IMG/VR virus record: IMGVR_UViG_3300042261_002385
Coordinates: 372,266 to 436,265 of that record
Reading direction: 5' to 3' (one strand)
Length of the DNA stretch: 64,000 nucleotides
Shown piece after piece: positions 46,944-64,000 of the stretch. The first letter of the stretch is position 1; each line of letters opens with the position of its first letter. Both the position numbers and the translations under genes were made by a program. The notes below the pieces were generated by a model that had not been told where the DNA came from, made no database searches, and was given only the letters and a program-made list of their open reading frames with translations.

Positions 46944-47531
46944 ATGAAAATAGTAAACAATAGAATAGACTTCTTAAACGAAGTTAAGACACTCATACCA
47001 GACAACCCAACGTGTATTGAAATAGGAGTAGAAAAAGGAGATTTTAGTAAACTACTTATACAATATCTGACACCTAAAAAACTATTCTTAGTAGATCCGT
47101 GGCAAACCGGTCACGATAAAAACTCAGAACCTAATTATGGAACAGTGTTAAATAGTTTACCAACCGCTTACTCTACAGAACAAGATTACGCTTCTATCTT
47201 AACTCATTTCTATAAAGATATAAAATCAAATAAGGTTATTGTAAGACCGGACTTCTCATATAATGTAGTAGATGATTTTCCTGACAACTATTTTGACTTT
47301 ATCTATATTGACTCCTGTCACCTTTATGATTCTGTTAAGGCAGATTTAAATGATTTTCTACCTAAATTAAAAGTAGACGGTATAATGGCCGGTCATGACT
47401 ATTTTAACTATGATAACTTTGGCGTAATCAAAGCAGTAGACGAGTTCTGTATTGAACACGGTTTTGAAAAAATAGTAATGGCTCAACCATCTTGGGATTG
47501 GGCACTTAGAAAAACAAATCTTAATTTCTAA
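46944..47531 (+). CDS. Class I SAM-dependent methyltransferase (Methyltransf_24-like)
   Basis: IEIGVEKG, FDFIYIDSCH.Y, GIMAGHDY. Confidence 0.88.
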   Translation: MKIVNNRIDFLNEVKTLIPDNPTCIEIGVEKGDFSKLLIQYLTPKKLFLVDPWQTGHDKNSEPNYGTVLNSLPTAYSTEQDYASILTHFYKDIKSNKVIVRPDFSYNVVDDFPDNYFDFIYIDSCHLYDSVKADLNDFLPKLKVDGIMAGHDYFNYDNFGVIKAVDEFCIEHGFEKIVMAQPSWDWALRKTNLNF

Positions 47532-47736
47532 CTATTATTTTGATTAAATAATAAATATTAAGTATATTTGTGATATGAAGACATATTATTTAATCGTAAG
47601 TCTATTAGCAGTTATTGGATTATCTCAATTGCTATCTGACTATCCTATCTTAGTTGGTTTAATTTCATTTGGAATCGCTATTGGTTACTCTAATGAACTG
47701 CACATACTTAAACAGAAAACTAATAAACAGTAGTCT

Positions 47737-47973
47737 ATGAAAGTATTCTTTGAATTAGAAGTAGGGTTATTTGACCGTGCTTCAATAAGAACGCAATTAA
47801 ATAACTCTAAAGCAAAACTCGAATATTGGTATCCCCAGTGTCGTGTTCTTCTTACAGAAGATAAGAATTGGTTTGAATCAAAGTTTTATTTTGAAGCTGA
47901 TGGTTTACCAGATACGGCTAAACTACATATGCAACATTGGCTAGGTAAACTAAAGAGTTTAGCAAAATTATGA
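47737..47973 (+). CDS. Hypothetical protein
   Basis: ORF in operon behind TTTG-N20-TATATTTG (47539-47570). Confidence 0.65.
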   Translation: MKVFFELEVGLFDRASIRTQLNNSKAKLEYWYPQCRVLLTEDKNWFESKFYFEADGLPDTAKLHMQHWLGKLKSLAKL

Positions 47974-48338
47974 TAGAAAAACTATGGAATGATATTAGAC
48001 TTATCTATGACGGTTATAATTTTAAGAGTAATTCATTAGTAGATGATCTAATGATTGTCTCACAAGATAACTATTACATAGTAAATTTCAGCCGTTCGGA
48101 TAGCCTGTCTAAAAAAAGAATCACTACTCAAATAAGAATCGAAAAGAACTATAATTTAGTTAATATGTGGTCTATAGGTAAACAATTCGATGATAGATAC
48201 CACAATAAAACAGATTATAAACTCACGGTTCAAACAAATAATAAAATAGAAGTAGATGAAAACCACAAAATTGAATTAGCATATAAAATAATCACACCAT
48301 TCCTAAGAGAAGTTAAACTTGCTAAGATTATAAACTAA
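47970..48338 (+). CDS. Hypothetical protein with C-terminal tag (REVKLAKIIN)
   Basis: ORF; tag. Confidence 0.7.
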   Translation: MIEKLWNDIRLIYDGYNFKSNSLVDDLMIVSQDNYYIVNFSRSDSLSKKRITTQIRIEKNYNLVNMWSIGKQFDDRYHNKTDYKLTVQTNNKIEVDENHKIELAYKIITPFLREVKLAKIIN

Positions 48339-48342
48339 AGAT

Positions 48343-48627
48343 ATGGATTTAGAACAAATGATACAAAGATGTCCTGACATCACTAAACTTACTCAATCTT
48401 TGCTTAATGAAGTGGCTATAAAAAAAACCGGTCAAGAACTGAATTTCAATCTAACATTCATTGAGAACGGATATGATGATTTAGATGTAATTGAATTAGT
48501 AATGGAAATCGAAAAGATATTAGATATCACTATACCCGATGATGTGGTAGATGTAATTATAAAAGGAAAACCACCACGTTTCACCGAGTGGATTCGAAAT
48601 GAAAAGATTAGACAACTTGGCTTATGA
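48343..48627 (+). CDS. Acyl-carrier-protein-like protein lacking the phosphopantetheine Ser, with C-terminal tag
   Basis: GYDDLDVIELVMEIEKILDITIPDD vs ACP consensus G.DSLD.VELVM.LEE.F.I.IPD; RNEKIRQLGL. Confidence 0.7.
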   Translation: MDLEQMIQRCPDITKLTQSLLNEVAIKKTGQELNFNLTFIENGYDDLDVIELVMEIEKILDITIPDDVVDVIIKGKPPRFTEWIRNEKIRQLGL

Positions 48628-49027
48628 TAAAAAAAGTCAGTGATACACTCTTTGGTATATGGGGTCTTTGCTTATTTGCAATAAAATGGGTATTAGGATT
48701 TATATGGTGCCAAACTACCGGTCATAAATTCACTACTATACACTATTCTAAAAAAAGTGGTGAATCACTCGAAATATGTGAACGTTGTTTAAAAACAAGA
48801 ATAAATTATTGATATTGTAAATAATTTTAACTATATTTGTAATTATTAACTATCAAATCAAAACCACTATGAAAGGAGACCTAAACGAAATTGCTATCAA
48901 ATCTATTATACAAGGAGTTATTGCAAACGCTATCATAGTTATTAGCGTCACTCTATACCAACTGATTTTCTAATACAAAAATCTGTTCATTTTTCTGTAT
49001 ATTAGAAAATAATCCTTATCTTTGTGT

Positions 49028-49552
49028 ATGAAATCAACCGTAATTAAACACATCGAAAAATTATCTAAAAACACCATCCCTACGCCAGATGCCGCTGGTA
49101 ACTTCTATGAATATCCACTACAATCCCTATTCACTATAACACACGGTGGAACTAAATCCGGCCACGTAGACCTTATCACATCAGGTAAATTTATCATTAC
49201 CGAAAACGATTTTAAAGTTGATAAAACATTCGCCTCAATGTCTATGTCCAGTAAAATTGGAAACCAATACAGATATAAATTTATTGTAACTATTAATGAA
49301 CCTAAAGAATCAGATATTAAAATCACAGGTTCTGAAAAAGCCCTTTACTCTGGTGTCTACAAAAAAGAACACACCTTTATGTTTAATTCATTTACTGATG
49401 CTAATGAATTCTACTTACATATGAGTGATAAATTAAACCTAACCAACGATACCTATAAAAATAGGAGATATACTCAATTGGTTAATGATAATGCACCAGA
49501 ATTCACCAAAGACGTTTATTTAGACTTAATTAGAGAGTTCAATGTAATGTAA
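49028..49552 (+). CDS. Hypothetical protein
   Basis: ORF; TATCTTTG at 49017 so start set to ATG 49028. Confidence 0.65.
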   Translation: MKSTVIKHIEKLSKNTIPTPDAAGNFYEYPLQSLFTITHGGTKSGHVDLITSGKFIITENDFKVDKTFASMSMSSKIGNQYRYKFIVTINEPKESDIKITGSEKALYSGVYKKEHTFMFNSFTDANEFYLHMSDKLNLTNDTYKNRRYTQLVNDNAPEFTKDVYLDLIREFNVM

Positions 49553-49885
49553 TATAAAATGACTACGAAAGTTGTTTATAACTCTGATTTTTAATATACA
49601 AAAATATGCACACTTTTCTGTAGTCTTTCTTAAAGACTCAAACTTTGTTTGTAGTATTATATAGCCTAATAGCCTTCTCCATTCGCAAAACTCTACGCTT
49701 AATAAACCACCTGGCACGCTTATTACGATACATCTGACTGAGGTTCTCTATAAAGGTTATCTTATAGTCCATAAATACGTTTTATCTTCATCATACGAGC
49801 CGTCTTAATGAGTTTAGATTTGATACGAGCCTTCCATGATTTTGCAAGTGAAAATGATGTTACTACATTATCACTGGCGACTTTG

Positions 49886-50077
49886 TTACTCTCCCAATCC
49901 ATCTTTGACATCCATAAACTTCTTTATGACAAGTTCTAAAAGCTTCGAACGGTCGTAACCATTCGACTCACAGTAAGATTCAAACCGGTCAAATACTTTG
50001 GCATCAATTGTGCCACATAAACGTTTCTTAGCGGCGTTTTCTCTTTTCGCCATTTCAAATTCATCTTCTTCTTTCAT
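49886..50077 (-). CDS. Ribbon-helix-helix (CopG/Arc-like) DNA-binding protein
   Basis: KRLCGTID..VFDRFESYC...G..RS.LLE..I..F pattern. Confidence 0.6.
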   Translation of the reverse strand: MKEEDEFEMAKRENAAKKRLCGTIDAKVFDRFESYCESNGYDRSKLLELVIKKFMDVKDGLGE

Positions 50078-50099
50078 AGTATATTATATATTAGAATTT

Positions 50100-50365
50100 T
50101 GTGCTCAAGTTCTGATTTCTAATCGTGGCTAACGTAAGTAAATGTAATGGCTGACTTAACCCTTTTGACACAAACTTACAAATACAAATAGAATCAACAC
50201 AAAATCATACAAAAAAACGACCACATTTCTGTATGTGATACAAATATCCGTTCAGAATTTTGTATCTTTGTATTTTACTTATACAGAAAAACAAACAATT
50301 TTTTGTATCAATTACATACCTGAATACAGAAATTTGACCGGAATTTCGCCCCAAAAATCCAGCCC
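50100..50365. other. Non-coding region with ATACA/TGTAT repeats at a strand-skew switch (candidate origin)
   Basis: 10-bp inverted repeat atttctgtat 50225/atacagaaat 50324; C-rich + strand to the left, G-rich to the right. Confidence 0.45.
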
Positions 50366-50375
50366 ATTTCCAAGC

Positions 50376-50600
50376 TTATTCCCCTATAATTTGATTAATC
50401 TTACCTTGTCTTATTTGAGACCTTATACTATAGAAGCTATCTAAATTAATTGACCAACTATTATTAATAAACACAGTTTCGCCTACTATCTGGTATACAC
50501 TATCTTGTTTTTGGAGTTCGCCTAAAATCCAATCTTGTGAAACTTCCATTTCGCCAATAGGAGACATTATAACTAATTTATCAACTTTATTATCTAACAT
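50376..50600 (-). CDS. Hypothetical protein with C-terminal tag (RQGKINQIIGE)
   Basis: ORF; tag. Confidence 0.7.
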   Translation of the reverse strand: MLDNKVDKLVIMSPIGEMEVSQDWILGELQKQDSVYQIVGETVFINNSWSINLDSFYSIRSQIRQGKINQIIGE

Positions 50601-50614
50601 AGATATTATATTAT

Positions 50615-50827
50615 ATGAATTGGATTTGTCGTTTATTTAGGCATAAGTTTCGTTATCAAGAAAAAAGAGTTCCTTTACAGATTGGGTCTATTACTAAAAA
50701 GTTTAGAAAGTGTCAGAGATGTGGTCTTACTCAGAAGTATTTAAATGATACTGGCCAGTGGATTGAATTAAGAAAGACATTATCTGAGATACGGGATGAA
50801 AAGCTATCTAAATTAGGAATCAAATAA
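50615..50827 (+). CDS. Small Cys/His protein with C-terminal tag (RDEKLSKLGIK)
   Basis: CRLFRH...CQRCG; tag. Confidence 0.7.
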   Translation: MNWICRLFRHKFRYQEKRVPLQIGSITKKFRKCQRCGLTQKYLNDTGQWIELRKTLSEIRDEKLSKLGIK

Positions 50828-51346
50828 TTTTCTTCATATTGGAGTAGATAACAAAGTTAATTCTATCTACTAATTGAGGTCTTTCCCTATCGTTTATTAT
50901 AAGGACTTTGTTATCTACTATGAATTTAGTTTTATACACTTTATTTAGTGTAGTATTTTTAACTTTACCTTTAAGGTCAAATGTTGAGATGCAGAGTATA
51001 TCTATCATTTGATATTATTAAGAATATCTTTAGGTAGTTCTGACTCTGTAATGGTAGTTGTCTTAGTTTTAGTTGGAGTTATTTGGACCATTTCAAAATG
51101 GAATAATTGTTTATTTTGAGTTTTAGTTCTGACGTGGTAGTATTCAGAGATTTGTCCTGTAGAGTGAATAGTTCCTAAGTGTTTTTTATCTTTCATAGTT
51201 ATATTATTATTGTTATTATTATTAGTTTTATAAAAATTAGGTGAAGGCATATCTGAGTAGTGGCACCATTGTTCATCGTTCATAGTTTTTATATGATGAA
51301 GTGGGTTTTTGGTTTAAATATTTTATAAATTAATATATAACTTATT

Positions 51347-51736
51347 GTGAAAAAGATTAAATCATTTAGTTTATTTGAGTCAGTTGATGATGCATTAGAC
51401 ATTTTACCTGTTGTAAAGGATATGTTATTAGAGTTAAGTGATTTAGATTATATTACTAATTGTGTAGTAAGAAGAATGGATGGTTGTGAGTATATTAGAA
51501 TAGGAATTTCTAAGCCAGTTGTGATTGGAGATAGATATGATGTTAAGGCATCATTCGAGTGGATTGATATAAAAGATATTATGGATACTATTATAGAGTA
51601 TTTAAAATCCGAAGGGTATCATTATCAAGTGGATAAGGGAACCCTATCTTGGAGTGGTCATCCTATTGTGGTCACTTCTGGAAATGCCTTTGAAGGTATT
51701 AAATCAAGATGTGAAATGTGGTTTGAAAAGAGATGA
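51347..51736 (+). CDS. N-tagged paralogue-family protein (close to 39869)
   Basis: MKKIKSFSLFES; shared D.GTL...G.PI..TSG...EMWF C-terminus. Confidence 0.75.
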   Translation: MKKIKSFSLFESVDDALDILPVVKDMLLELSDLDYITNCVVRRMDGCEYIRIGISKPVVIGDRYDVKASFEWIDIKDIMDTIIEYLKSEGYHYQVDKGTLSWSGHPIVVTSGNAFEGIKSRCEMWFEKR

Positions 51737-52248
51737 AGAGGTTAAAATCATTTAAGTTATTTAATGAATCAAAAGATTATAATTTATCTACTATAAAGGA
51801 TATGTTATTAGATTTTACTGATAAGGATATTGATGTTGATGTCAGTGAAGGTTCTTGGATTTTAGATAATGGGGAAGTTGAATATGTTAAGATAAAGATT
51901 GGAAAATTTAATGGACCTCTTTTTAGTATAGAAAGGTGTTTATTAGATGTTATAGATTATTTAGAAGAATCTGGGTTTGTTATGATGGATGAGTCTTGGT
52001 ATTGGAATGATTCTTGGCAGCATTACGTTGGGTGTCCTAATTGTTTATCAGATGATTTTGAGGACAATTATGGTTTACGTGGAGCAACTCGTTGTAATAA
52101 GTGTGAGTATATCGGGCCTCCTGATAGTTTTTTACAAGACCAGTGGTCAGTTACAAGATATGATTTGGCAAAGGATATTAAGGGTAGGCAGGTTGAACAA
52201 ATAGAGTTACTTTTCAGTGATAGAAGGAGTAAGTTCGGTGGTGGGTAA
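51733..52248 (+). CDS. N-tagged paralogue-family protein with Zn-ribbon insert
   Basis: MKRLKSFKLFNES; CPNC...CNKC. Confidence 0.7.
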   Translation: MKRLKSFKLFNESKDYNLSTIKDMLLDFTDKDIDVDVSEGSWILDNGEVEYVKIKIGKFNGPLFSIERCLLDVIDYLEESGFVMMDESWYWNDSWQHYVGCPNCLSDDFEDNYGLRGATRCNKCEYIGPPDSFLQDQWSVTRYDLAKDIKGRQVEQIELLFSDRRSKFGGG

Positions 52249-52478
52249 TTAGAAATTCCTGCCTAAAAAATTTTTAAGCCGTCTTCGACGATAGGTCAAA
52301 ATTTTTTTTCGGGGAGTCAAAATTTTTTTAAACTGTAGAATCAGAATTAATCAGATAGTTTTTATGGGTTAGATGTGAAAGAGATTATTAGTCTTTATCA
52401 ATAATAGACCAAATTAATCCACTGATGCCAGCTGCTATAAGTAAAGTGATTAAGGTTGAAATATCCATAGTTAGATTT

Positions 52479-52748
52479 TTAGAATGCTGGAACGGTGTCT
52501 TTAATTACTTTATCGTATTTATGATCAATTAAGATAAAAGGAGCTGGAATTACCACTTGAGATCCGTCAGAGTTTCGGTAAGTGGCATAGTTTTCACCCA
52601 ATTCGATAGAATCAGTGAACCAGATGGCTTTATGTTTTTCGCCTTTGTAGTGGACGTATCCTTTAATTTCATAACGCCAGGTGGTTTCTTTTTTGGATTG
52701 TTGACAACTTAAAATAAGTAACGTGGTTAAGATAATTAGGTATTTCAT
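52479..52748 (-). CDS. Putative lipoprotein
   Basis: Lipobox LILSC after hydrophobic stretch. Confidence 0.7.
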   Translation of the reverse strand: MKYLIILTTLLILSCQQSKKETTWRYEIKGYVHYKGEKHKAIWFTDSIELGENYATYRNSDGSQVVIPAPFILIDHKYDKVIKDTVPAF

Positions 52749-52789
52749 ATTTTGTAATTTTAAGTTATATTAATCTGGTTTAAAAAGTT

Positions 52790-53542
52790 TTATATGATAT
52801 TAAACCAACAGTATTGTTTATGCCAGTTTTGGGTATGATTAAAGAAGTAACTTCCTGTTCTAGAGTTATCAATAAGTATTAGACCAGGTTGGTCTTGGTT
52901 ATTTCCTCTACAAACTATAATTTTATCATCATCTATTAATTCACTGAAATAGGTTTGTATTCCATTAAATTGATTTAGGGCATGATTTATATAAGGAGAT
53001 GATTTTTTTCCATATATGATAGATGTAGCGGGTCCAATTCTTCCTTCCATACTAATTATACTTGAGCACATTTGTATCTTTGTAATTATTCTTCGATAAT
53101 CTTGGTCAAAATCTCCGGTTAGTTTGACATCTAGTGATGACATTGGTCCATATGCAATTGATTTAGGAAGTTTAGTATTTTGGTTTAAGAAATCAATTAC
53201 TTCATCTTTGAGTTTTTGGTAAGTCTCAAATTTTTTAGAAGTCAGTGTAAGTTTCATAATTTTTGGACTTATCACTTGATTTCCTGAACTACTTACTATT
53301 GAGTTATATTGTGAGCTTAAATCAACTGCTATTGATGAAGTATTATTTTCTCTAAAATTGTTTAGTTCTTCAATCTTATCATCTAAAACAGCATCAACTA
53401 CTAATTCTCTGTTTCGTTGTTTAATCTGTCTTTGATATTCTTCTTCATCTTGTGATACCATATCAATATACATCAATTGAGCCGTTGGGTGACTCATTTG
53501 TTTATCTGAGTAGTTACAAATAGATTTAAGTTCGTCAATCAT
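52790..53542 (-). CDS. Hypothetical protein with internal tag-like helix
   Basis: RNRELVVDAVLDDKIEEL in the N-terminal part. Confidence 0.65.
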   Translation of the reverse strand: MIDELKSICNYSDKQMSHPTAQLMYIDMVSQDEEEYQRQIKQRNRELVVDAVLDDKIEELNNFRENNTSSIAVDLSSQYNSIVSSSGNQVISPKIMKLTLTSKKFETYQKLKDEVIDFLNQNTKLPKSIAYGPMSSLDVKLTGDFDQDYRRIITKIQMCSSIISMEGRIGPATSIIYGKKSSPYINHALNQFNGIQTYFSELIDDDKIIVCRGNNQDQPGLILIDNSRTGSYFFNHTQNWHKQYCWFNII

Positions 53543-53544
53543 AA

Positions 53545-55995
53545 TTATCTTAATAATCTCACGCTACCCTGAAGTTCTCTTTTATCATCGTTTTTTGGAA
53601 GACCAAACTCGATAGTCCAGTTATAGATTCCATCAGGACAGATTTTATTATTATAAGTTCCATCCCATTTACCAGTAACATCAAAAGATTCCCATACCAT
53701 TTCTCCCCATCTATTATACATAGTCATATGAAACTGATAGATATCAACTCCTGAAGTAATAATTGGAGAAAAGTATTGATTGTGTTCGTCTCCGTCTGGA
53801 GTAAATGAATTTGGAATATAAATTAATTCTTGTGGACAAAGTTGAATAGTAACTGTTATATTTTGTGGATAAGATTGGCAGCCTAATTCCCAGCGAGTTG
53901 CTTGAAATAAAAACACACCTTCTTGATTCCAAGTTAAGTTAATTTGGTCTCCGATTAAGGTATCTCCAAAAGTTGACCATTCTGTATAACCTGGTTGTGA
54001 AAAAAGTGATACATAGGTATCAGTAATTGAGTCTCCTTCACATAGTTCGTGATACTCAGAATTAGTGATTTGACCATCAATTTGTATTGAGAATTGTGGA
54101 CGTGGATTTACTTCAATTTGAGATGTTTGTGTAAATTGACACCCTGATTGAATATAAGTATACGTTATGGTGTTTAGACCTGCTAATTGTGTTGTTGGAC
54201 AGAACTGAGAATTTTGAACACCAACTCCTGAGAATTGACCACCTACTGGTTGTGCAGATAATTGGACACAGTTATCATAGTCACAAAGTGGAAGAACTGG
54301 TGTGATTTGTGGAACGATATCTAAATCTACAATAGTAAATGTTTGTGGAGGTGAAAGACATCCAGTTACATCTTCTCCTATAACAGTTAAGGCATTTGGG
54401 TAAACACCACCAGCGACTCCTGTCACATCGAGTAAGATGTTTTGGGTTCCTTGACCAGAGATTGTTCCGATTGTTGAGGTCCAGTTATAGGTTAAGTTAT
54501 TAAAAAGACTTGATGTTTGATAAGGGTTATTTGAAGAGTTAACACAAACTGTATCACTTCCTATTATTGGGTTTATTATAACTTGTGGTGGATCTGTTAA
54601 GGTAACGGTTCCAGTTGCTTGGCATCCATTAGCATCGGTTACTACAACACTAAAGTTTCCTTGGCAAAGACCAGTTGCAGTTTGTCCAGTTTGATTATCA
54701 GACCAAAGATAAGTGTAGGGTGCAATACCTGCTACTGGATTTACCACGGCTTGTCCATCACAGTAACTGTAGCAAAGTGGATTAGTTCCTGTAACTGGTG
54801 GTTGTGGAAGTGCTGCTGGTTCAACAATAGTGGCCAATCCTTGATAGCTACAACCAGATGCGTCCTGGAGTGTGAAGTTATAGTTTCCAGCACAAAGACC
54901 ATTTTGTGTTAGTGAGTTTCCGACTAAACCAGGCCAACTTATAGTTATTGGAGCAGTTCCACCTATTGGAGTTACAATTATCTGACAAGTGCAATCACCA
55001 TTACAAAGTGGATTCGTTATTTGAACTCCTGGAGGTGGTAGATTCGGGGTTGGAGTCACTAAAATAGTGTCTGGTCCTAAGTTTCCAGCTCCAGCATTAC
55101 ATTGAGACCAGCCTAGATTACAAGTTGGATAAACAAATTGACAAGTGTATTGAGTTGGTCCATTTGGAGTTACCGTGATTTGAGGTCCGGTTCCGATTGG
55201 AATTGGATTTCCAACTTGAAACCAAGTTAATGTAGGTGTCACTTGTGGACCTGATGGTGTCCATCTGTAAGCGTTGTTCTGAGTTGTCCACTGAGTTGAG
55301 TTTCTACCTGGAACAGTCACGGCTGCGGATCCTAAAAGGTTATGAACACCTTGAACTGCGGTTCCGCCAGCCCATTGTGGACAGTTTGGTTTATTTTGAA
55401 TATGATTTTCGATTACGTTTGTAGATTCGTAAATTACAATATGGAAAGTTCCTAATAGGTTAGTGCAAGAAAACATAGGAACGTTTATCCAACTAACAAT
55501 TAATCTACGACATGGAGCTACGCCTTGAACTTGATAACGGACTAAACCTCCGATACCTGGATTCCAGTCTTGCCACGGTCCCATAATACAATTCTTAGGT
55601 GTTAAGGCGTTTCCTGTTGGAATTGGATTTGATGTAAAAGTTGTTGGTTGACCAGCGCTAAATGAAATCCAACCGTTTGAACCTATCCAGAATTGTGTAT
55701 ACGTGTTTCCATAGTAACAGAAAGTAAAACCAATGTTAAATGGTCCAGATTGAGAGTCATCTCCTAAAGCAACAGTAGTTCCGGCATTGGGTTGACCGAC
55801 AAATGGTATGTTAGTAACGGTATAGTTTGTGGTTTGATTTGGATTAGAACCAGGTCCACACTGAGAAAGGTCAGCTGTTAAAGTAGTTTGTGTTACTCCA
55901 CAAGGTAGAGTTACATCTGGTCCTAAATAAGGACAATATTGACCAAATGTGAATTGGGCAAAGATAAGGCTTAAAAAAATTATTAGGTTTCTCAT
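53545..55995 (-). CDS. T9SS cargo adhesin-like protein: SprB-like repeats + gliding-motility-associated (type B) C-terminal domain
   Basis: Signal peptide ...FGQ; P.C...C.G....P..G.APYTY.WSD repeats; YIPNSFTPDGD...NRWGE...WDGTY...DGIY.W. Confidence 0.88.
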   Translation of the reverse strand: MRNLIIFLSLIFAQFTFGQYCPYLGPDVTLPCGVTQTTLTADLSQCGPGSNPNQTTNYTVTNIPFVGQPNAGTTVALGDDSQSGPFNIGFTFCYYGNTYTQFWIGSNGWISFSAGQPTTFTSNPIPTGNALTPKNCIMGPWQDWNPGIGGLVRYQVQGVAPCRRLIVSWINVPMFSCTNLLGTFHIVIYESTNVIENHIQNKPNCPQWAGGTAVQGVHNLLGSAAVTVPGRNSTQWTTQNNAYRWTPSGPQVTPTLTWFQVGNPIPIGTGPQITVTPNGPTQYTCQFVYPTCNLGWSQCNAGAGNLGPDTILVTPTPNLPPPGVQITNPLCNGDCTCQIIVTPIGGTAPITISWPGLVGNSLTQNGLCAGNYNFTLQDASGCSYQGLATIVEPAALPQPPVTGTNPLCYSYCDGQAVVNPVAGIAPYTYLWSDNQTGQTATGLCQGNFSVVVTDANGCQATGTVTLTDPPQVIINPIIGSDTVCVNSSNNPYQTSSLFNNLTYNWTSTIGTISGQGTQNILLDVTGVAGGVYPNALTVIGEDVTGCLSPPQTFTIVDLDIVPQITPVLPLCDYDNCVQLSAQPVGGQFSGVGVQNSQFCPTTQLAGLNTITYTYIQSGCQFTQTSQIEVNPRPQFSIQIDGQITNSEYHELCEGDSITDTYVSLFSQPGYTEWSTFGDTLIGDQINLTWNQEGVFLFQATRWELGCQSYPQNITVTIQLCPQELIYIPNSFTPDGDEHNQYFSPIITSGVDIYQFHMTMYNRWGEMVWESFDVTGKWDGTYNNKICPDGIYNWTIEFGLPKNDDKRELQGSVRLLR

Positions 55996-56117
55996 AAATT
56001 ATGATATGGTTTTTTTTAAAAAAAGTTTATTACGGTATATATTGATAAGTTGTTTGTGAATTATCGTAAATAGATAAAAGATTAGCAAACTTATTAACTG
56101 GATTAGCAACCAAAATA

Positions 56118-56164
56118 TTTGATAATTTAGATAAATTCCTTATCTTTGTATTATAAATCACTAC
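56118..56164 (+). promoter_or_regulatory. Promoter TTTG-N19-TATCTTTG with AATCACTAC leader
   Basis: Consensus elements at 56118, 56141, 56156. Confidence 0.72.
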
Positions 56165-56177
56165 AAAAACAACACTT

Positions 56178-56864
56178 ATGACATACGATATTAACAAGCG
56201 TTTCGAATTTTTAAATCAACTAACAGGACTTGTTGTTGATGGAATTACTCCATCTTTGATAGTTACTGGTGAAGGTGGACTTGGTAAAACTCACTCAGTT
56301 ATGCAAACTATCCGTCAGAAGCACGTTCCTGACCACGAATTTATAGTGTTTAAAGGATATTCTACCGCTCGAGGTCTTTACAATACTCTTTTTGATAATA
56401 ATGGTAAAGTTATTGTTTTTGACGACTGTGATTCTATTTTAGAGGACAGAGTGGCACTTAACATTTTAAAGTCGGCTCTTGACTCTTATGAGAAAAGAAC
56501 AATTTCTTGGATGTCACGTATGGCAAGAAATGACGAGTATCCACAACAATTTGATTTCAAAGGTCAAGTCATTTTTATCTCAAATAAAAATATGGATTCT
56601 ATTGATGATGCGATTTTGAGTCGTTCACTTACAGTAGACCTTTCAATGACTTCTGTAGAAAAAATTCAACGAATGAGTTTTATCTTACCGAATATTTTAC
56701 CGGACTATGATTTAGATATCAAACAAGAGGCTTTAGAGTTCTTGAATCAAAAGAAGGATGATGTTAATTTGAATCTACGTAGTTTGATTATTACTTCTAA
56801 ATTAAGAGCGGCTTATCCTGAAAACTGGAAAGACTTAGCCAATTATATGATTACTACTAAATAA
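56178..56864 (+). CDS. P-loop (AAA+-like) ATPase
   Basis: IVTGEGGLGKT Walker A; VIVFDDCD Walker B; IFISN sensor; SRS. Confidence 0.8.
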   Translation: MTYDINKRFEFLNQLTGLVVDGITPSLIVTGEGGLGKTHSVMQTIRQKHVPDHEFIVFKGYSTARGLYNTLFDNNGKVIVFDDCDSILEDRVALNILKSALDSYEKRTISWMSRMARNDEYPQQFDFKGQVIFISNKNMDSIDDAILSRSLTVDLSMTSVEKIQRMSFILPNILPDYDLDIKQEALEFLNQKKDDVNLNLRSLIITSKLRAAYPENWKDLANYMITTK

Positions 56865-56872
56865 TCTGTAAC

Positions 56873-56903
56873 AAAAAACCCACTCAATCGAGTGGGTTTT
56901 TTT
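56873..56903. terminator. Bidirectional intrinsic terminator
   Basis: aaaaaacccactc-aatc-gagtgggtttttt. Confidence 0.85.
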
Positions 56904-56928
56904 CTATGTTAGTAAAATAAAATTATTA

Positions 56929-57507
56929 TCAAAAAGGTGAAAGTTTATGACGTGAGGGGTTTAAATTTTTACCACTTCCTGCTACAGCGGACAAGCATTT
57001 CCAACATATCGCAGCTGCGAAAGTAATAATAGCTCCGGCTAAAACACCAATACCTAATCCAGTTCCTAATAAAGCAAGTAAAGTAACGATGGCTCCTCCA
57101 ATAGTGATTGCTGCTGAACTTAACCAACCTATCATTTTCAAGAATTCAACTGCACTCATACCTAAAATTTCTTCAGTAATTAACGTATAGTTTTCTTTTA
57201 ATACCGGTTGTAATTTTTTCTCGTCAGTTGGTGGAACATAATTTTTTAATTTTTCATAACAATCTTTTATGTCTTCTATACCAACTTTTTCGGATACTAT
57301 TTTACAAGCAGCATTGAATTTATCGGCATATTTCTCCATTACCTCTTTAGCCTTCTCCATACCTTCGCGGTAAGATCCTGTTAGTTTATCCCAGAGGTTT
57401 TTAAGACTATTTTTTAGTGAGTCCCACCACTCACCCAATCTGCTAAATAATCCTTCTTCTTCATTAATGGAATAAGAAAAACTTTCGAATGATTTGACGT
57501 ATTTCAT
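56929..57507 (-). CDS. N-tagged protein with C-terminal hydrophobic hairpin
   Basis: MKYVKSFESF; two Gly/Ala-rich TM-like helices near C-terminus. Confidence 0.7.
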   Translation of the reverse strand: MKYVKSFESFSYSINEEEGLFSRLGEWWDSLKNSLKNLWDKLTGSYREGMEKAKEVMEKYADKFNAACKIVSEKVGIEDIKDCYEKLKNYVPPTDEKKLQPVLKENYTLITEEILGMSAVEFLKMIGWLSSAAITIGGAIVTLLALLGTGLGIGVLAGAIITFAAAICWKCLSAVAGSGKNLNPSRHKLSPF

Positions 57508-57901
57508 TTTATTTAATATTTTTTTTATATATTAAGTGACAAAAATGTTTTTTTTACCGATTTTTCAACTGTTTTTTTTTGTTTGACTTAATTAATGTAT
57601 AGTCTAATGAGGATATATCTTAAACTCTACTCACGGTGATAAAAAGAAAAATGATAGAACCAGAATTCAAAGAATCGGTGATTACTTTCGAATCGGTGAG
57701 ATTTTAGACTAATCTTCAGTCCAGTTTTCGGGGTCTATCAAATCACCTTCATCAATCAAATCCATTTTTATATAGATAAACACTTGATTGTGTTCTTTAA
57801 TGAATTTTAGTTCATCGTAGTAGTTGAATTCTTTTTCTGCACGTTTTTTCCAATAATCATAAACGCCATCAAAGTCTTTGTTAAAAGAAGTTGCTTTTAC
57901 T

Positions 57902-58159
57902 TTACCAATTTTTTTGAGTCTTAGTTCCATTTATCAGCTGTTCTATTTTATAGTCTCTTTTATTTATTATTTTTTCATTTAATACATTTTCTAAAACTAA
58001 TTCTAGGTCAGCTGCAAGTGAGTCTATTTTTATTGTGAAGATTTCACCATCAAATGTATCTTTTAAGGTATATGATGGTAGAAATGTGGTTGAGTGGTAA
58101 GATATAGGTAGATGATTTTGGAATCTACCACTAAATTTTTTAAGTAATTTATCAATCAT
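57902..58159 (-). CDS. Hypothetical protein with near-terminal tag (RDYKIEQLING)
   Basis: ORF; tag. Confidence 0.65.
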   Translation of the reverse strand: MIDKLLKKFSGRFQNHLPISYHSTTFLPSYTLKDTFDGEIFTIKIDSLAADLELVLENVLNEKIINKRDYKIEQLINGTKTQKNW

Positions 58160-58170
58160 TTAATCTGATA

Positions 58171-58389
58171 TTAATTAAGTAGTTTATTTAATAGTTGTTC
58201 TCTATGAGATCTAAGATTTCTCCTATAAGAGTCTAAAATTATTACTTCAATTTCTTTTTCTGTGATGAGAAAACCATGATGCATATCTTGTATTATTTCA
58301 GGTGACAGGTCAAGTTTTACTCCTTTGTAATATGCTTGAGTAAGACCATCTGGTTCTTTAATCCATTTTATCTCGTCTTTCTCTATCAT
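58171..58389 (-). CDS. Hypothetical protein with C-terminal tag (REQLLNKLLN)
   Basis: ORF; tag. Confidence 0.65.
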   Translation of the reverse strand: MIEKDEIKWIKEPDGLTQAYYKGVKLDLSPEIIQDMHHGFLITEKEIEVIILDSYRRNLRSHREQLLNKLLN

Positions 58390-58582
58390 TTAGTATTTGT
58401 TCTAATTGTTTATCTCTTATTTGATCTAATTCTTTTTTATAGTAGAACATAATAATAGATTCTGCTTTCATATCTGTTTGAATGACATAGTCTTGAACAT
58501 TTTGACGAGTGACTTTAAGTTTTATATCGTCATAGAAAACTTCTTCGCCTTTAAATATTAGGAGTTCTTTGTTAAATTTCAT
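58358..58582 (-). CDS. Hypothetical protein with near-terminal tag (RDKQLEQILND)
   Basis: ORF; tag. Confidence 0.65.
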   Translation of the reverse strand: MKFNKELLIFKGEEVFYDDIKLKVTRQNVQDYVIQTDMKAESIIMFYYKKELDQIRDKQLEQILNDRERRDKMD

Positions 58583-58991
58583 ACTTTTTATATATTTTGC
58601 TCATTTTTTGTTGTTAAATTTTGTTTCTAAATTTTAACATAATCATATAAAACCGTTGATAATAAAGGGTTTCATAAAAAATAGCTATTTTTGAATTATA
58701 TATACAAAATGATTAGAAGGATTATATCGTGGTATAAAATCTGGATATTAAAAAGAGAAATAAAGTCAATTCAAGTAGAAATTGATGAGTATTATCTTAC
58801 GCTATTAGCCCGTAATGATGAATTTCATAAGGTCATAGACATAGACAAACACTTTCAGAGAGTTGTTAAACTAAGAGACGTTGAAAGACGTGAGTTAGAA
58901 AGACAGATTGAATCTCTTAAAAGGTAGTTAAAACTTCTCTTTTTAATTAAGTAATCAATTTCACTTAAATTGTTTACCCTAAATTTGTGCC

Positions 58992-60641
58992 TTAAATTTT
59001 AGTTACGAGATTTTCTACAATTTGGAGACCTCTTATTATTTTTGAATAATAATCATTTACTCTCCAATTTCTCAAATATTGACAAGCTCTTTCACCAGTA
59101 TCTTGACCTAAATAATCTATGAAATTTGATAAATTATCTAAACCGTAAGTGCTATTAGAAAAGAAGTTTGATAGACTTATCATTTTTTGACGAGCTATTT
59201 CTAAATCTTCTATGGTATTAAATTCACCAGACATTAGTCTTGTATAGAACTTTTGACTTATTCTTTCTAAACTTTCAACAATTGGTAAATATTTGTTTTC
59301 AGTTTCTTCACTGTCGGATTTTAGAATTTTTTTAACAGTTTCTAAATTTTTAGTGATTCTAGTAGTTCTTTCAGCTGCTCTTTTGTAAAGGTCTTTGATT
59401 CTATTATTAATTTGATTAATGCAGTATTCTTTATTACTTTCGTCTTCAGTAGACATCATATCATAATAAAGTTCTGATATTGATCCAAAATAGTTTTGAT
59501 ATCTTGAAGCTGATTCTAAGACAAACATTGACCATCTACCACCAACTCCTCTAGATACTAAATTTTTGATATTAGACACATCGCCTATGATGTCAGCTTT
59601 AAGTGCAATTTGAGTAAGATATCTTTCAATATTTTGTTTTCTAACATCATCATCACTAACTACTAATCTGCTGCCAGATTTAAGTTCTTCTCTTTCATCT
59701 TTTATTTCACTTCTACGTTGATACTCACCCGACTTTAATTTATTTAAGTCTAACACTAAGGCAAAATGAGCATCTTTTATAGTAGATTCTACATTTGTTC
59801 CAGTATATGATTTAAAGTATTGGTTTAGTCCAACATTCCACTCGTAAGGATCTACGGCATCTTTATCATCATCATCATCACCTTCTTCTTTTTCTTTAAG
59901 AACACAAATTCTGTTAAAATCTCCACCAGATACATTCCAAGAGTATCTTCCATAACTTCTCCAAGCACTACCATTTGGTGATCCACCGTCGAACCTGTCT
60001 TGAATACAGAATACTTCTCCACCACTTTGAAAAATCGTTGCAATTACATCTGGATCTCTATCATGTGCTGCAATTGTAACTTTTGTCAAGTGTGGTAGAC
60101 TACGGAGAGTTCTTACTCCATTTGAATCAGGTAACAGGGTAGATACTACTTTATATTTTTGCAAAGATTTTGATTTAGATGCTACGCTTCTAAGAACTCC
60201 ATCAACTCCAGTTTGTGTGATGAATTTACCATCTGATGAAAACCAGAATTTAATTATTTTTACCTCTGGTTGTTGTGGTTCTTTTCCAGATCCATCACAA
60301 TGGGGACAATCAACGATTCTAGTTCTTTGACCCCACATACGTGCTAATTTACCTGATTTACAAACCTCACCTTCAACACCGTGTTGTCTGAATGCGGTTT
60401 TAGAAGTCATTTTACAAGGTTCATCTTTAGGTTCAAATTTAACATTTAGTGCCTTTTTGAAAGGTAAGTATTCAAACATATCATCTGAAAACTGAGATAG
60501 TGGAAAATCGTAACTGCGAGCTAATTTTTCGAGTGTATTAATGAATCTTTGTTTAGATTCAGAATTTATATATCCTAAAATTTTAGTTAATTTAACTGAT
60601 TCAAATGCTTCGAAAAGTTTGAGATATTTTAATTGTCTCAT
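58992..60641 (-). CDS. Large N-tagged hypothetical protein
   Basis: MRQLKYLKLFEAFE; CPHCDGSG Zn motif; helical C-half. Confidence 0.75.
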   Translation of the reverse strand: MRQLKYLKLFEAFESVKLTKILGYINSESKQRFINTLEKLARSYDFPLSQFSDDMFEYLPFKKALNVKFEPKDEPCKMTSKTAFRQHGVEGEVCKSGKLARMWGQRTRIVDCPHCDGSGKEPQQPEVKIIKFWFSSDGKFITQTGVDGVLRSVASKSKSLQKYKVVSTLLPDSNGVRTLRSLPHLTKVTIAAHDRDPDVIATIFQSGGEVFCIQDRFDGGSPNGSAWRSYGRYSWNVSGGDFNRICVLKEKEEGDDDDDKDAVDPYEWNVGLNQYFKSYTGTNVESTIKDAHFALVLDLNKLKSGEYQRRSEIKDEREELKSGSRLVVSDDDVRKQNIERYLTQIALKADIIGDVSNIKNLVSRGVGGRWSMFVLESASRYQNYFGSISELYYDMMSTEDESNKEYCINQINNRIKDLYKRAAERTTRITKNLETVKKILKSDSEETENKYLPIVESLERISQKFYTRLMSGEFNTIEDLEIARQKMISLSNFFSNSTYGLDNLSNFIDYLGQDTGERACQYLRNWRVNDYYSKIIRGLQIVENLVTKI

Positions 60642-62302
60642 ATTTGTGGACCTACGATTTCTACTTTTATTCCGCTTCTTCTTAGTTCGGATACATATTC
60701 TTTAGTTTGCTTGTCAACTATAAGGTCACCAGAAATTACTAATTTTTTTACTTTTAAGTTACTGAAACCTTCTTTCATATCAGCTAATGTATCTAATGTA
60801 TAAAGTATTTGTAATTCTTCCAATTCAGTGAATATAGAAAGATCAATATCTCCTGTCATATCACAACTTAATATCTGAAGTTTCTTAATATTTGGATTTA
60901 CTGAAACAATTTCTTCGAATATCTTAGAGTCAAATTTACATTTATCAAATGCGATAGAGTCTGTTTTTACGTTGCTAAATCCTGACAATGTTTTTATTTT
61001 CAATGATTTGAATTTAATCCATTCTAAGTCAAGTGGAATTTGAGTCAAATTCTCTGGAATATCTGTAGTCTCAATTACTAGTTGTTTGATTTTTGCTTTT
61101 GGTGATATTTTTATCTTACTCCAGTCATAAACTGCACTTAAGTAAAGTGATTTAGTATTTTTTCCAATAAACTGAGCTTGGTCAAGTCTCATTCTATCCA
61201 TATAAGGAGCTCTAATTGAATCTTCAGGATCAATATCCGGTGTGAATAAATATCTAGAAGAACTTGGGCTTGTGTTTTCAACGTTGCTTGAATATTTTGT
61301 TACAAGCTCGTCAAATATATCTTTCATCCTATCTGGATAAGCTCTGTCAAAGTAAATCTTTGCTTCACTTTGGTCATCAAATGATTCGATATTTCTAATC
61401 ATCATTCTTGAAAGTGGTAGTTTATCTGATATTTTTTCATCATTCCAGAAAATCGGAGTATCAAATACAAAGAAAGCTGGAATTGAATTCGGATCGAAAA
61501 CGTTTCCTAATAGTTGTTCTCTGTAGCCACCTGTGTATAAATGTTGACAAGAACTATAGAATTTTGAAATAGACATGTTCAAAATATCACTCGGATTGTG
61601 GTCAATCTGAAGATATATATCTCTTCCAAAGATTGCATATTCATATCTGTAGTCACTGTTGTGATTTTCTTTAGCTAAATTTCTTAATTGACTAATATCT
61701 CTTGATGAGAAAATAGTTGTAGAGACTCTATCATCTGGATAACATCTATTGTAGTCATCAACAAAGCTATTGATATTAATTAAGTTCGTTGAGAAAACAG
61801 GATCACCTGCATTCTTTTTAACACGAATCATATTTCCTTCTTCATCTCTAATTGGTCTACCATTCTCATCTTTTTGAATTCTTTCTGAAGCTTGAGTTTC
61901 TCTAATTTCTAATTTTCTAAATACCGGCTCATAGATAAAAACTATTTGATCTACAGTTGGTGCTTGGATATTAAAATTATCCATAACCATTTTACTAGCA
62001 TCGGTTAGAAGCTCTAAATTTATAGACTCTTGAAGAACATGATTGAATTTATCTGGAATACTTGTAAATGAATTCATAATATTTTCCATATTACAATCAA
62101 AAAAATAAGATAAAACTTTAAGTTTATCTTCTTCTTCAAGTTTCCATCTACCTTGTTTAATCTTATCGGTCGGATCTACTTCTTCATAATCTAAGTATTT
62201 CTCACCCCATTGTTGAGCAACAGCTTTTGCTTGTTTTGGTAAGATAATATCTTTGATTCTGGCTTCGTTTAACCATTGTTCTCTAGTTTTAATCCACTTC
62301 AT
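60638..62302 (-). CDS. Large N-tagged protein with LRR-like C-terminus
   Basis: MKWIKTREQWLNE; MS....SSCQ motif; L..L.I repeats at C-terminus. Confidence 0.7.
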   Translation of the reverse strand: MKWIKTREQWLNEARIKDIILPKQAKAVAQQWGEKYLDYEEVDPTDKIKQGRWKLEEEDKLKVLSYFFDCNMENIMNSFTSIPDKFNHVLQESINLELLTDASKMVMDNFNIQAPTVDQIVFIYEPVFRKLEIRETQASERIQKDENGRPIRDEEGNMIRVKKNAGDPVFSTNLININSFVDDYNRCYPDDRVSTTIFSSRDISQLRNLAKENHNSDYRYEYAIFGRDIYLQIDHNPSDILNMSISKFYSSCQHLYTGGYREQLLGNVFDPNSIPAFFVFDTPIFWNDEKISDKLPLSRMMIRNIESFDDQSEAKIYFDRAYPDRMKDIFDELVTKYSSNVENTSPSSSRYLFTPDIDPEDSIRAPYMDRMRLDQAQFIGKNTKSLYLSAVYDWSKIKISPKAKIKQLVIETTDIPENLTQIPLDLEWIKFKSLKIKTLSGFSNVKTDSIAFDKCKFDSKIFEEIVSVNPNIKKLQILSCDMTGDIDLSIFTELEELQILYTLDTLADMKEGFSNLKVKKLVISGDLIVDKQTKEYVSELRRSGIKVEIVGPQI

Positions 62303-63727: not shown

Positions 63728-64000
63728 TTAATTTACACTTTTAGACAGTTCAGAACCTGGCTTAAATTTTGCCACTCTCTTCGCTGGAATCTCAAGAGTT
63801 TCACCTGTCTTAGGATTTCGTCCTTTACGTGCGTCTCTTTGAGTTGTAGCGAAAGTGCCAAAACCTACAAGTGTTACCTTATCTCCACCTTTAAGTGCTT
63901 CTGTGATAGTAGATACTAATGTATCAATCACTTCGTTACTTTTAGTTTTAGTAAGACCGGTTTTTTCTGCTAAAGAATTTACTAAATCTGCTTTATTCAT
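63728..64000 (-). CDS. hup: DNA-binding protein HU
   Basis: MNKADLV...GDKVTLVGFGTF....R.AR.GRNPKTGE...IPA....KFKPG. Confidence 0.96.
   Translation of the reverse strand: MNKADLVNSLAEKTGLTKTKSNEVIDTLVSTITEALKGGDKVTLVGFGTFATTQRDARKGRNPKTGETLEIPAKRVAKFKPGSELSKSVN

Follow-up and report, generated by a model that had tools for sequence, protein, structure and literature searches.

Genes and features at the locus

The locus lies in a roughly 520-kb freshwater phage of Bacteroidota. The sequence analysed here (the window, 64,000 nt) is the last 64 kb of the 436,265-bp IMG/VR record IMGVR_UViG_3300042261_002385 (31% GC; hereafter G000), and coordinates are those of the window unless stated otherwise. 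Around a small gene predicted to encode a ribbon-helix-helix (RHH) protein, a series of 28-bp palindromic units and a change in strand composition, the following features were recognized:

48973-49000 (+), satellite unit U1, a 28-bp palindrome whose right arm overlaps the -33 region of the promoter of gene 49028-49552
49017-49024 (+), Bacteroidota-type -7 box TATCTTTG, 3 nt before the ATG at 49028
49028-49552 (+), strain-variable cassette gene (174 aa, no known family), transcribed towards the RHH operon
49596-49623 (+), unit U2 (one arm mismatch), in the zone where gene 49028-49552 and the RHH operon converge
49886-50077 (-), predicted RHH (Arc/CopG-like) gene, 63 aa
50078-50206 (-), promoter and leader of the RHH gene, with the -33 TTTG at 50203-50200, the -7 box TAAGTTTG at 50178-50171 and a roughly 90-nt leader; a nearly invariant non-coding block
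50207-50332 (no strand assigned), array of units U3 (50207-50234), U4 (50238-50265) and U5 (50281-50308, opposite orientation), plus a half site at 50324-50332
50421-50635 (no strand assigned), best estimate of the polarity switch, between genes 50376-50600 (-) and 50615-50827 (+); by gene-level counts it can lie anywhere in 49552-50615
50615-55995 (no strand assigned), strongly skewed island, with the + strand G- and T-rich and C- and A-poor at third codon positions in genes of both orientations
55996-62302 (no strand assigned), weaker tail of the same polarity

The record corresponds to coordinates about 85,975-522,239 of a 522,324-bp JGI contig, and record-wide results given below therefore leave out the 86 kb trimmed from its left. 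It is broadly collinear, in reverse orientation, with the curated circular 634,780-bp huge phage LR745206, in which 262 of 527 proteins have homologues. LR745206 is one of the Bacteroidetes-infecting Mahaphages of Al-Shayeb et al. (PMC7162821). The 'provirus' label of the record looks wrong, since it is a cut from a longer contig, has no integrase or resolvase and is collinear with a circular phage, in which the trimmed 86 kb should correspond to about 571-460 kb. A 21.6-kb contig continues 5.2 kb past the record's end with the same synteny. The phage is found in lake, river, estuary and drinking-water metagenomes from 12 studies. A Bacteroidota host agrees with a host-like type IX secretion surface protein and with a 3-fold enrichment of the Bacteroidota -7 box TAnnTTTG (consensus as in PMC9723704 and PMC6847099) at -40 to -11 of start codons. 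This box often ends only 3-13 nt before the start codon (peak at -20 to -11 for the box start), and many phage mRNAs would therefore be leaderless or nearly so. No other genetic code was needed.

The surface protein (816 aa, 53545-55995, -) has SprB repeat, PKD-like and CHU_C (type IX secretion sorting) domains and 40% GC inside the island, and its homologue (46% identity) sits at a different place in LR745206 (25.8-28.0 kb). Two adjacent paralogous genes at 51347-52248 (129 and 171 aa, N-terminus of the MKxxKxFxLFE type) belong to a family with many copies in all three phages compared here; in other strains contigs join 51436 to 51742, as expected for recombination between the paralogues. Also close to the site are a phage-encoded HU-type DNA-binding protein (63728-64000, -; Pfam E=1e-34), a 228-aa AAA ATPase (56178-56864, +; phrog_1250, weak clamp-loader similarity), a methyltransferase (46944-47531, +) and an acyl-carrier-like protein (48343-48627, +). 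A 34-aa hydrophobic ORF (48870-48974, +) ends exactly at U1; it was also called by JGI in a strain variant and is absent or replaced in one run (joint 48800 to 48972).

The predicted RHH protein matches the PHROG 3180 Arc-like family (E=5.9e-5), whereas its match to Pfam PF10723 (RepB-RCR_reg, E=0.019) scores 15.3 bits against a cut-off of 21 bits. A profile of the RHH family searched against PDB sequences gave no meaningful hit. The AF2 monomer (pLDDT 83) has three helices, with the expected strand modelled as a helix, and the top Foldseek neighbours are nearly all RHH proteins (ORF56, CopG, NikR, Arc, ParG), all with E>1. Homologues at 48-94% identity are always next to a unit array.

The palindromic units and their promoters

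A sequence-only reading of this DNA had proposed a candidate replication origin at a sharp strand-skew switch, citing composition counts in two 60-nt windows, about nine ATACA/TGTAT units, three ATACAGAAA copies and a divergent RHH gene. Each of these observations is confirmed. Window 49081-49140 has 18 C and 7 G, and window 51421-51480 has 1 C and 13 G. Nine pentamers lie at 50182-50328, the densest such stretch in 436 kb against a genome mean of 1.4 per 480 nt, and ATACAGAAA is found at 50226-50234 (-), 50281 (+) and 50324 (+). The possibility that an assembly join lies at this point, named beforehand as a refuting condition, was examined and excluded, as a 26.6-kb contig from another run spans 47500-53400 with 0 differences.

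The pentamers are the arms of 28-bp palindromic units with the consensus ATACAAAAA-N10-TTTTCTGTAT and a conserved G and C near the centre, so that contacts would fall about every 11.5 bp. Exact ATACA-N18-TGTAT occurs four times in the record, all at this locus (48973, 50207, 50238 and 50281), where shuffles give about two genome-wide. A weight-matrix scan finds five units (48973, 49596, 50207, 50238 and 50281) and none elsewhere in the record. LR745206 also has exactly five high-scoring units, all within 605.8-615.4 kb, and a 49-nt stretch around U3 is 90% identical between the two phages. Start-to-start spacings in the array, including the half site, are 31, 43 and 43 bp, i.e. whole helical turns. 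Exact-pattern scans of IMG/VR with the unit consensus returned 10 single hits, at chance level, and scans with the U3 block and with the invariant 17-nt core described below returned none. Only a degenerate unit pattern followed by a weight-matrix filter found a new, more distant relative, a 281,114-bp IMG/VR record (hereafter G001), in which 80 of 394 proteins are shared and the RHH is 48% identical.

In ten strain variants and in lineages whose RHH is 48-85% identical, units sit at the same distances from the RHH start codon (-157, -188, -231, and -274 or -284), although the flanking genes differ. The non-coding block between the proximal unit and the RHH gene is better conserved than the gene itself, being maintained in lineages whose RHH is only 62-70% identical, and it contains a full Bacteroidota promoter and the leader. 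A 17-nt core, TTTTGTGTTGATYCTAT, is invariant even in LR745206. An Rfam search of 48.8-51.0 kb found nothing. Within the leader (50124-50169, or about 50095-50206 by the alignment, A1 columns about 209-310) there is a 46-nt imperfect inverted repeat (GTAAGT ... ACTTAC) that includes the -7 box; the consensus fold shows no covariation because the sequences are identical.

The other units ('satellites') are nearly identical within a genome and lie in intergenic gaps on the RHH side. In at least seven independent places in relatives the unit ends 16-17 nt upstream of TATCTTTG, as U1 does at 16 nt; the unit's arm supplies or overlaps the -33 element, and the start codon often follows only 3-4 nt later, as in four satellite cassettes. 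The units are therefore promoter-linked putative operators of a small regulon and not simply iterons, with protein binding inferred from sequence and position. An array of subsites at the gene's own promoter is found in all lineages with an RHH. However, LR745206 has units but no RHH was detected in it or in GenBank phages, so that the RHH may not be the unit-binding protein, or is not essential.

In other strains, contigs leave and rejoin the reference exactly at the units. Breakpoints fall at 48972/48975/48999, joints run from 48999/49000 to 49655/49675 and from 48800 to 48972, and one contig carries about 1.2 kb of other DNA between U1 and U2. Gene 49028-49552 is replaced or absent in other strains, with joints at U1 and U2, and U2 is conserved in strain variants. 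This behaviour matches the PeSL 'mobile regulatory cassettes' of T4-type phages (PMC2839356, PMC4122927), in which a conserved promoter-plus-palindrome motif at the borders of small variable genes coincides with insertion, deletion and replacement breakpoints between close strains. Here, however, there are only 2-4 cassettes per genome, all beside one regulator gene, and the palindrome lies upstream of the promoter instead of forming a terminator stem-loop. The 10-bp inverted arms around an 8-bp alternating purine-pyrimidine centre, the occurrence of units in both orientations and the breakpoints at units might also suggest core sites of a site-specific recombinase (like dif or lox) that shuffles or inverts cassettes. 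This is very unlikely, since the record has no tyrosine or serine recombinase (no PF00589 or PF00239 match) and no inversion joints appear in the contigs. In addition, the promoter geometry explains the units' position, short-repeat homologous exchange explains the breakpoints, as with T4 PeSLs, and a recombinase would not explain the skew.

Strand bias at the array

Raw skews mostly follow gene direction, as sense strands are G- and A-rich and strand correlates with skew at r about 0.75. The raw cumulative GC skew has no global extremum at the locus (minimum at genome position 316,122), contrary to what the sequence-only reading required, and the raw AT curve peaks at 49570 simply where a block of 22 + strand genes ends. 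Once gene direction is removed, the site stands out. The residual (coding-strand-corrected) cumulative GC curve has its global minimum at 50598, the residual AT curve has its maximum at 50366, and the largest residual GC step in the genome is here for every window size from 3 to 13 kb. At third codon positions, the cumulative + strand G-minus-C (GC3) curve has its global minimum at 50421, and a two-sided scan ranks 50485-50635 first among C-to-G switches in the genome, at z 7.6-8.6.

All eight genes at 50615-55995, three on + and five on -, have a + strand G3 excess (15/19, 7/17, 9/23, 17/29, 29/43, 19/31, 12/48 and 70/174); the + genes sum to 61 over 91 sites and the - genes to 117 over 293. 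To the left, gene 49028-49552 has -32 over 54 sites. A weaker excess continues to about 62.3 kb (through 64000, +73 over 509 third-position G/C sites) and vanishes in the 5.2 kb beyond the record's end (-12 over 360 in the extension, L069). In this genome the bias is strongest next to the site. The + strand of the island has lost C and A and gained G and T, which is the pattern expected from deamination of a strand that is often single-stranded. The long arc of the genome has a weak, nearly uniform + strand C3 excess in both gene orientations. Two further, milder segments of positive GC3 skew, at 133-143 kb and 281-301 kb of the record, each lie within a single-orientation gene block and have no units; the second holds giant genes (1695 and 3055 aa) at 44% GC.

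Contig depth is about two-fold higher left of 50.5 kb in two runs, but these depths are per-contig sums over mixed strains and were rejected as evidence. An inversion cannot explain the island, because the rest of the genome has a bias of only 0.05-0.15 and an inverted piece could not reach 0.4-0.9; the collinear genes at 57.7-64 kb are also not inverted relative to LR745206.

Occurrence of the switch in related phages

In LR745206, an analysis in 10-kb bins suggested that the units were not at a skew switch, but per-gene counts reversed that conclusion. A sharp switch is found at about 605,050-605,365, 0.5-0.8 kb from the unit that shares the 49-nt block with U3, and the scan ranks 605,050-605,250 first in 635 kb (z 8.8-12). 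A 12.8-kb island (592,352-605,044; for example -103/163 and -88/248) lies on the corresponding side, and three strongly opposite genes lie on the other. In G001, a four-unit array (239,757-239,911) bounds a 13.3-kb island in which + and - genes alike have a GC3 skew of about -0.45 (-0.74 and -0.38 at four-fold sites). However, the array is the top C-to-G switch of G001 only at a 10-kb window, other sites ranking higher at 2-5 kb windows, and the bias is strongest 8-11 kb from the array, which does not fit a simple decay from an origin. In five partial contigs with unrelated flanking genes, the local minimum falls in the array-bearing gap, again for both gene orientations. No motif is shared at the distal island borders.

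Island gene content is not conserved, and homologues of the G000 island genes that lie elsewhere in LR745206 carry the opposite sense-strand bias. The bias is therefore made in place and depends on position relative to the array. Coincidence, i.e. a few genes of odd composition, such as host-derived genes, lying beside a regulatory repeat cluster, is largely refuted by the recurrence of the same polarity in three genomes and five partial contigs with unrelated island genes, although the island includes the host-like gene at 40% GC and other skewed islands exist.

Interpretation of the locus

The sequence-only reading, that a C-to-G switch marks an origin because leading strands tend to be G/T-rich, is partly supported. 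A sharp switch independent of transcription direction lies in or just right of the interval 49886-50365, is the strongest such switch in the genome and recurs beside the homologous repeats in other phages. Not supported as stated is a global extremum of the raw cumulative skew. Much of the raw flip follows gene direction, there is no classical genome-wide V, and the reversed-polarity arc is only about 5-13 kb, not a replichore, with sharp distal ends in LR745206 and G001. The repeats are promoter-linked and mark cassette boundaries rather than being classical iterons. No initiator, helicase loader or primase gene was found at the locus; there is no DnaA family hit in the record, the only DnaB-like gene is 230 kb away (at 192.6 kb), and no DnaA-box-like cluster was seen by eye. 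No distinct AT-rich unwinding element was found; the intergenic region is 30.5% GC against 31.5% for the genome, and a 14-bp pure A/T stretch at 50601-50614 is not conserved in relatives.

The analysis itself shows a conserved module composed of a predicted Arc/CopG-like RHH gene, its host-type promoter with an invariant leader, and a helically phased array of palindromic, putatively protein-binding units. It also shows that the same units, fused to consensus host-type promoters, head a few neighbouring accessory genes, that these pieces are the points at which strains have swapped cassettes, and that the array is the fixed point at which a strand bias independent of gene direction changes sign in this phage and in every relative examined. 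The strand running 5' to 3' away from the array has lost C and A and gained G and T at synonymous sites of the bordering 5-13-kb island. What remains inferred, from assembled contigs alone, is that this reflects frequent single-strandedness, that the RHH protein binds the units and that DNA synthesis starts at or next to the array. In this view, one fork or a strand-displacement stretch would run about 5-13 kb into the island, whereas the main fork would run the other way around the long arc, and the RHH protein would control the module in the way plasmid copy-control repressors control rep promoters. The polarity is that of DNA synthesis, or of some other process exposing one strand, moving outward from the array on both sides, which in bacteria marks an origin. 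A replication origin region with its control module is thus the best-supported reading, although it is unproven and its probability is estimated at about 0.45. The weak opposite bias of the long arc fits a main fork travelling away from the site, and Al-Shayeb et al. reported unidirectional skew patterns in about 30% of huge phages (PMC7162821). These authors also moved genome starts to intergenic regions that were in some cases suspected origins; the start of LR745206 maps by synteny to 45-47.7 kb of the window, which is at best weak, indirect support.

A purely transcriptional switch, in which an Arc-like repressor shuts off a handful of strong host-type promoters of early or accessory genes and the bias comes from very heavy outward transcription (R-loops and an exposed non-template strand), is considered unlikely. 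The promoter overlap of the satellite units, the resemblance of the RHH to Arc and CopG, the G-rich sense strands genome-wide, the absence of nearby replication genes and the orientation of most island genes away from the site in LR745206 are in its favour. However, five of the eight strongly skewed genes in G000, all eight island genes in L064 and about half in G001 point towards the array, and all of them carry the same strand polarity, so that antisense transcription would have to dominate. Further, no canonical outward promoter was found at the array, as the only + strand -7 box, at 50263, lacks a -33 element.

The alternative of a genome end or packaging site, offered by the sequence-only reading, is not excluded on contig evidence but is also unlikely. 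The island would then be a long terminal repeat or first-step-transfer-like region, or the start of packaging, and the array a pac, stop or end-processing signal. The island has a defined length with sharp distal ends in two genomes and holds small, variable, accessory-type genes behind host-type promoters. In addition, the 522-kb source contig ends about 14 kb right of the array, near where the bias fades, and many short contigs end within 0.1-0.9 kb of the array. Nevertheless, contigs in several samples run straight through the array and through the record's end, the short-contig ends are scattered rather than at one base and coincide with strain-variable DNA, and no terminal repeat is flagged for any record. 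Resection of a free end would also expose the opposite strand to the one that looks exposed.

Among known systems, plasmid copy-control RHH repressors next to origins (CopG of pMV158, ORF56 of pRN1) share a small, here predicted, RHH protein whose operator of phased, partly palindromic subsites lies at its own promoter and next to the replication region, which is here inferred. The weak Pfam hit is to RepB-RCR_reg and the top fold neighbours are ORF56 and CopG, but all matches are below curated or significance thresholds, no rep gene lies downstream, the 28-bp units are also dispersed at other promoters and the genome is about 520 kb. The phage lambda ori (four dyad-symmetric iterons) and iteron plasmids share a phased row of 3-4 dyad-symmetric repeats within about 130 bp at a strand-bias switch; here, the units are not inside or beside an initiator gene, no distinct AT-rich flank was found, and copies elsewhere are promoter-linked. 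In the P22 immI region (Arc and Mnt repressors), as would be the case here, an Arc-like RHH shuts off neighbouring promoters through palindromic operators overlapping promoter elements. The present units are 28 bp rather than 17-21 bp, with an upstream array of 3-4 units and Bacteroidota -33/-7 promoters, and no antirepressor was recognized. By analogy only, strand-displacement replication zones of vertebrate mitochondrial DNA show large synonymous-site GC and TA skew of one sign in genes of both orientations, as expected for a strand that stays single-stranded for long, whereas here the bias is confined to 5-13 kb of a roughly 0.3-0.6-Mb double-stranded phage genome.

Significance

To our knowledge, and from literature searches that were not exhaustive, no replication origin has been mapped in a huge uncultured phage. 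Here, a compact, conserved DNA element coincides in three genomes with a gene-orientation-independent strand-bias switch, the strongest in two of them, which provides a concrete candidate site and a candidate regulator. Third-codon-position skew scored per gene is also a simple computational marker that works where raw GC skew is swamped by gene direction. The hyper-skewed island is the least expected part and has no established explanation; if caused by single-strandedness, it would point to an unusual replication or DNA-handling step. A more speculative and unlikely, but not excluded, possibility is that huge Bacteroidota phages of the Mahaphage group keep one strand of a 5-13-kb domain single-stranded for long periods, as a giant displacement loop or strand-displacement start zone anchored at a palindrome array that in two of the three genomes lies beside an RHH gene. 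This would be a mode of replication initiation not described for large double-stranded DNA phages, leaving a mitochondria-like mutational scar that could be used to find origins in uncultured phage genomes. Separately, the unit-plus-promoter cassettes show how accessory genes are swapped between strains of a widespread freshwater phage.
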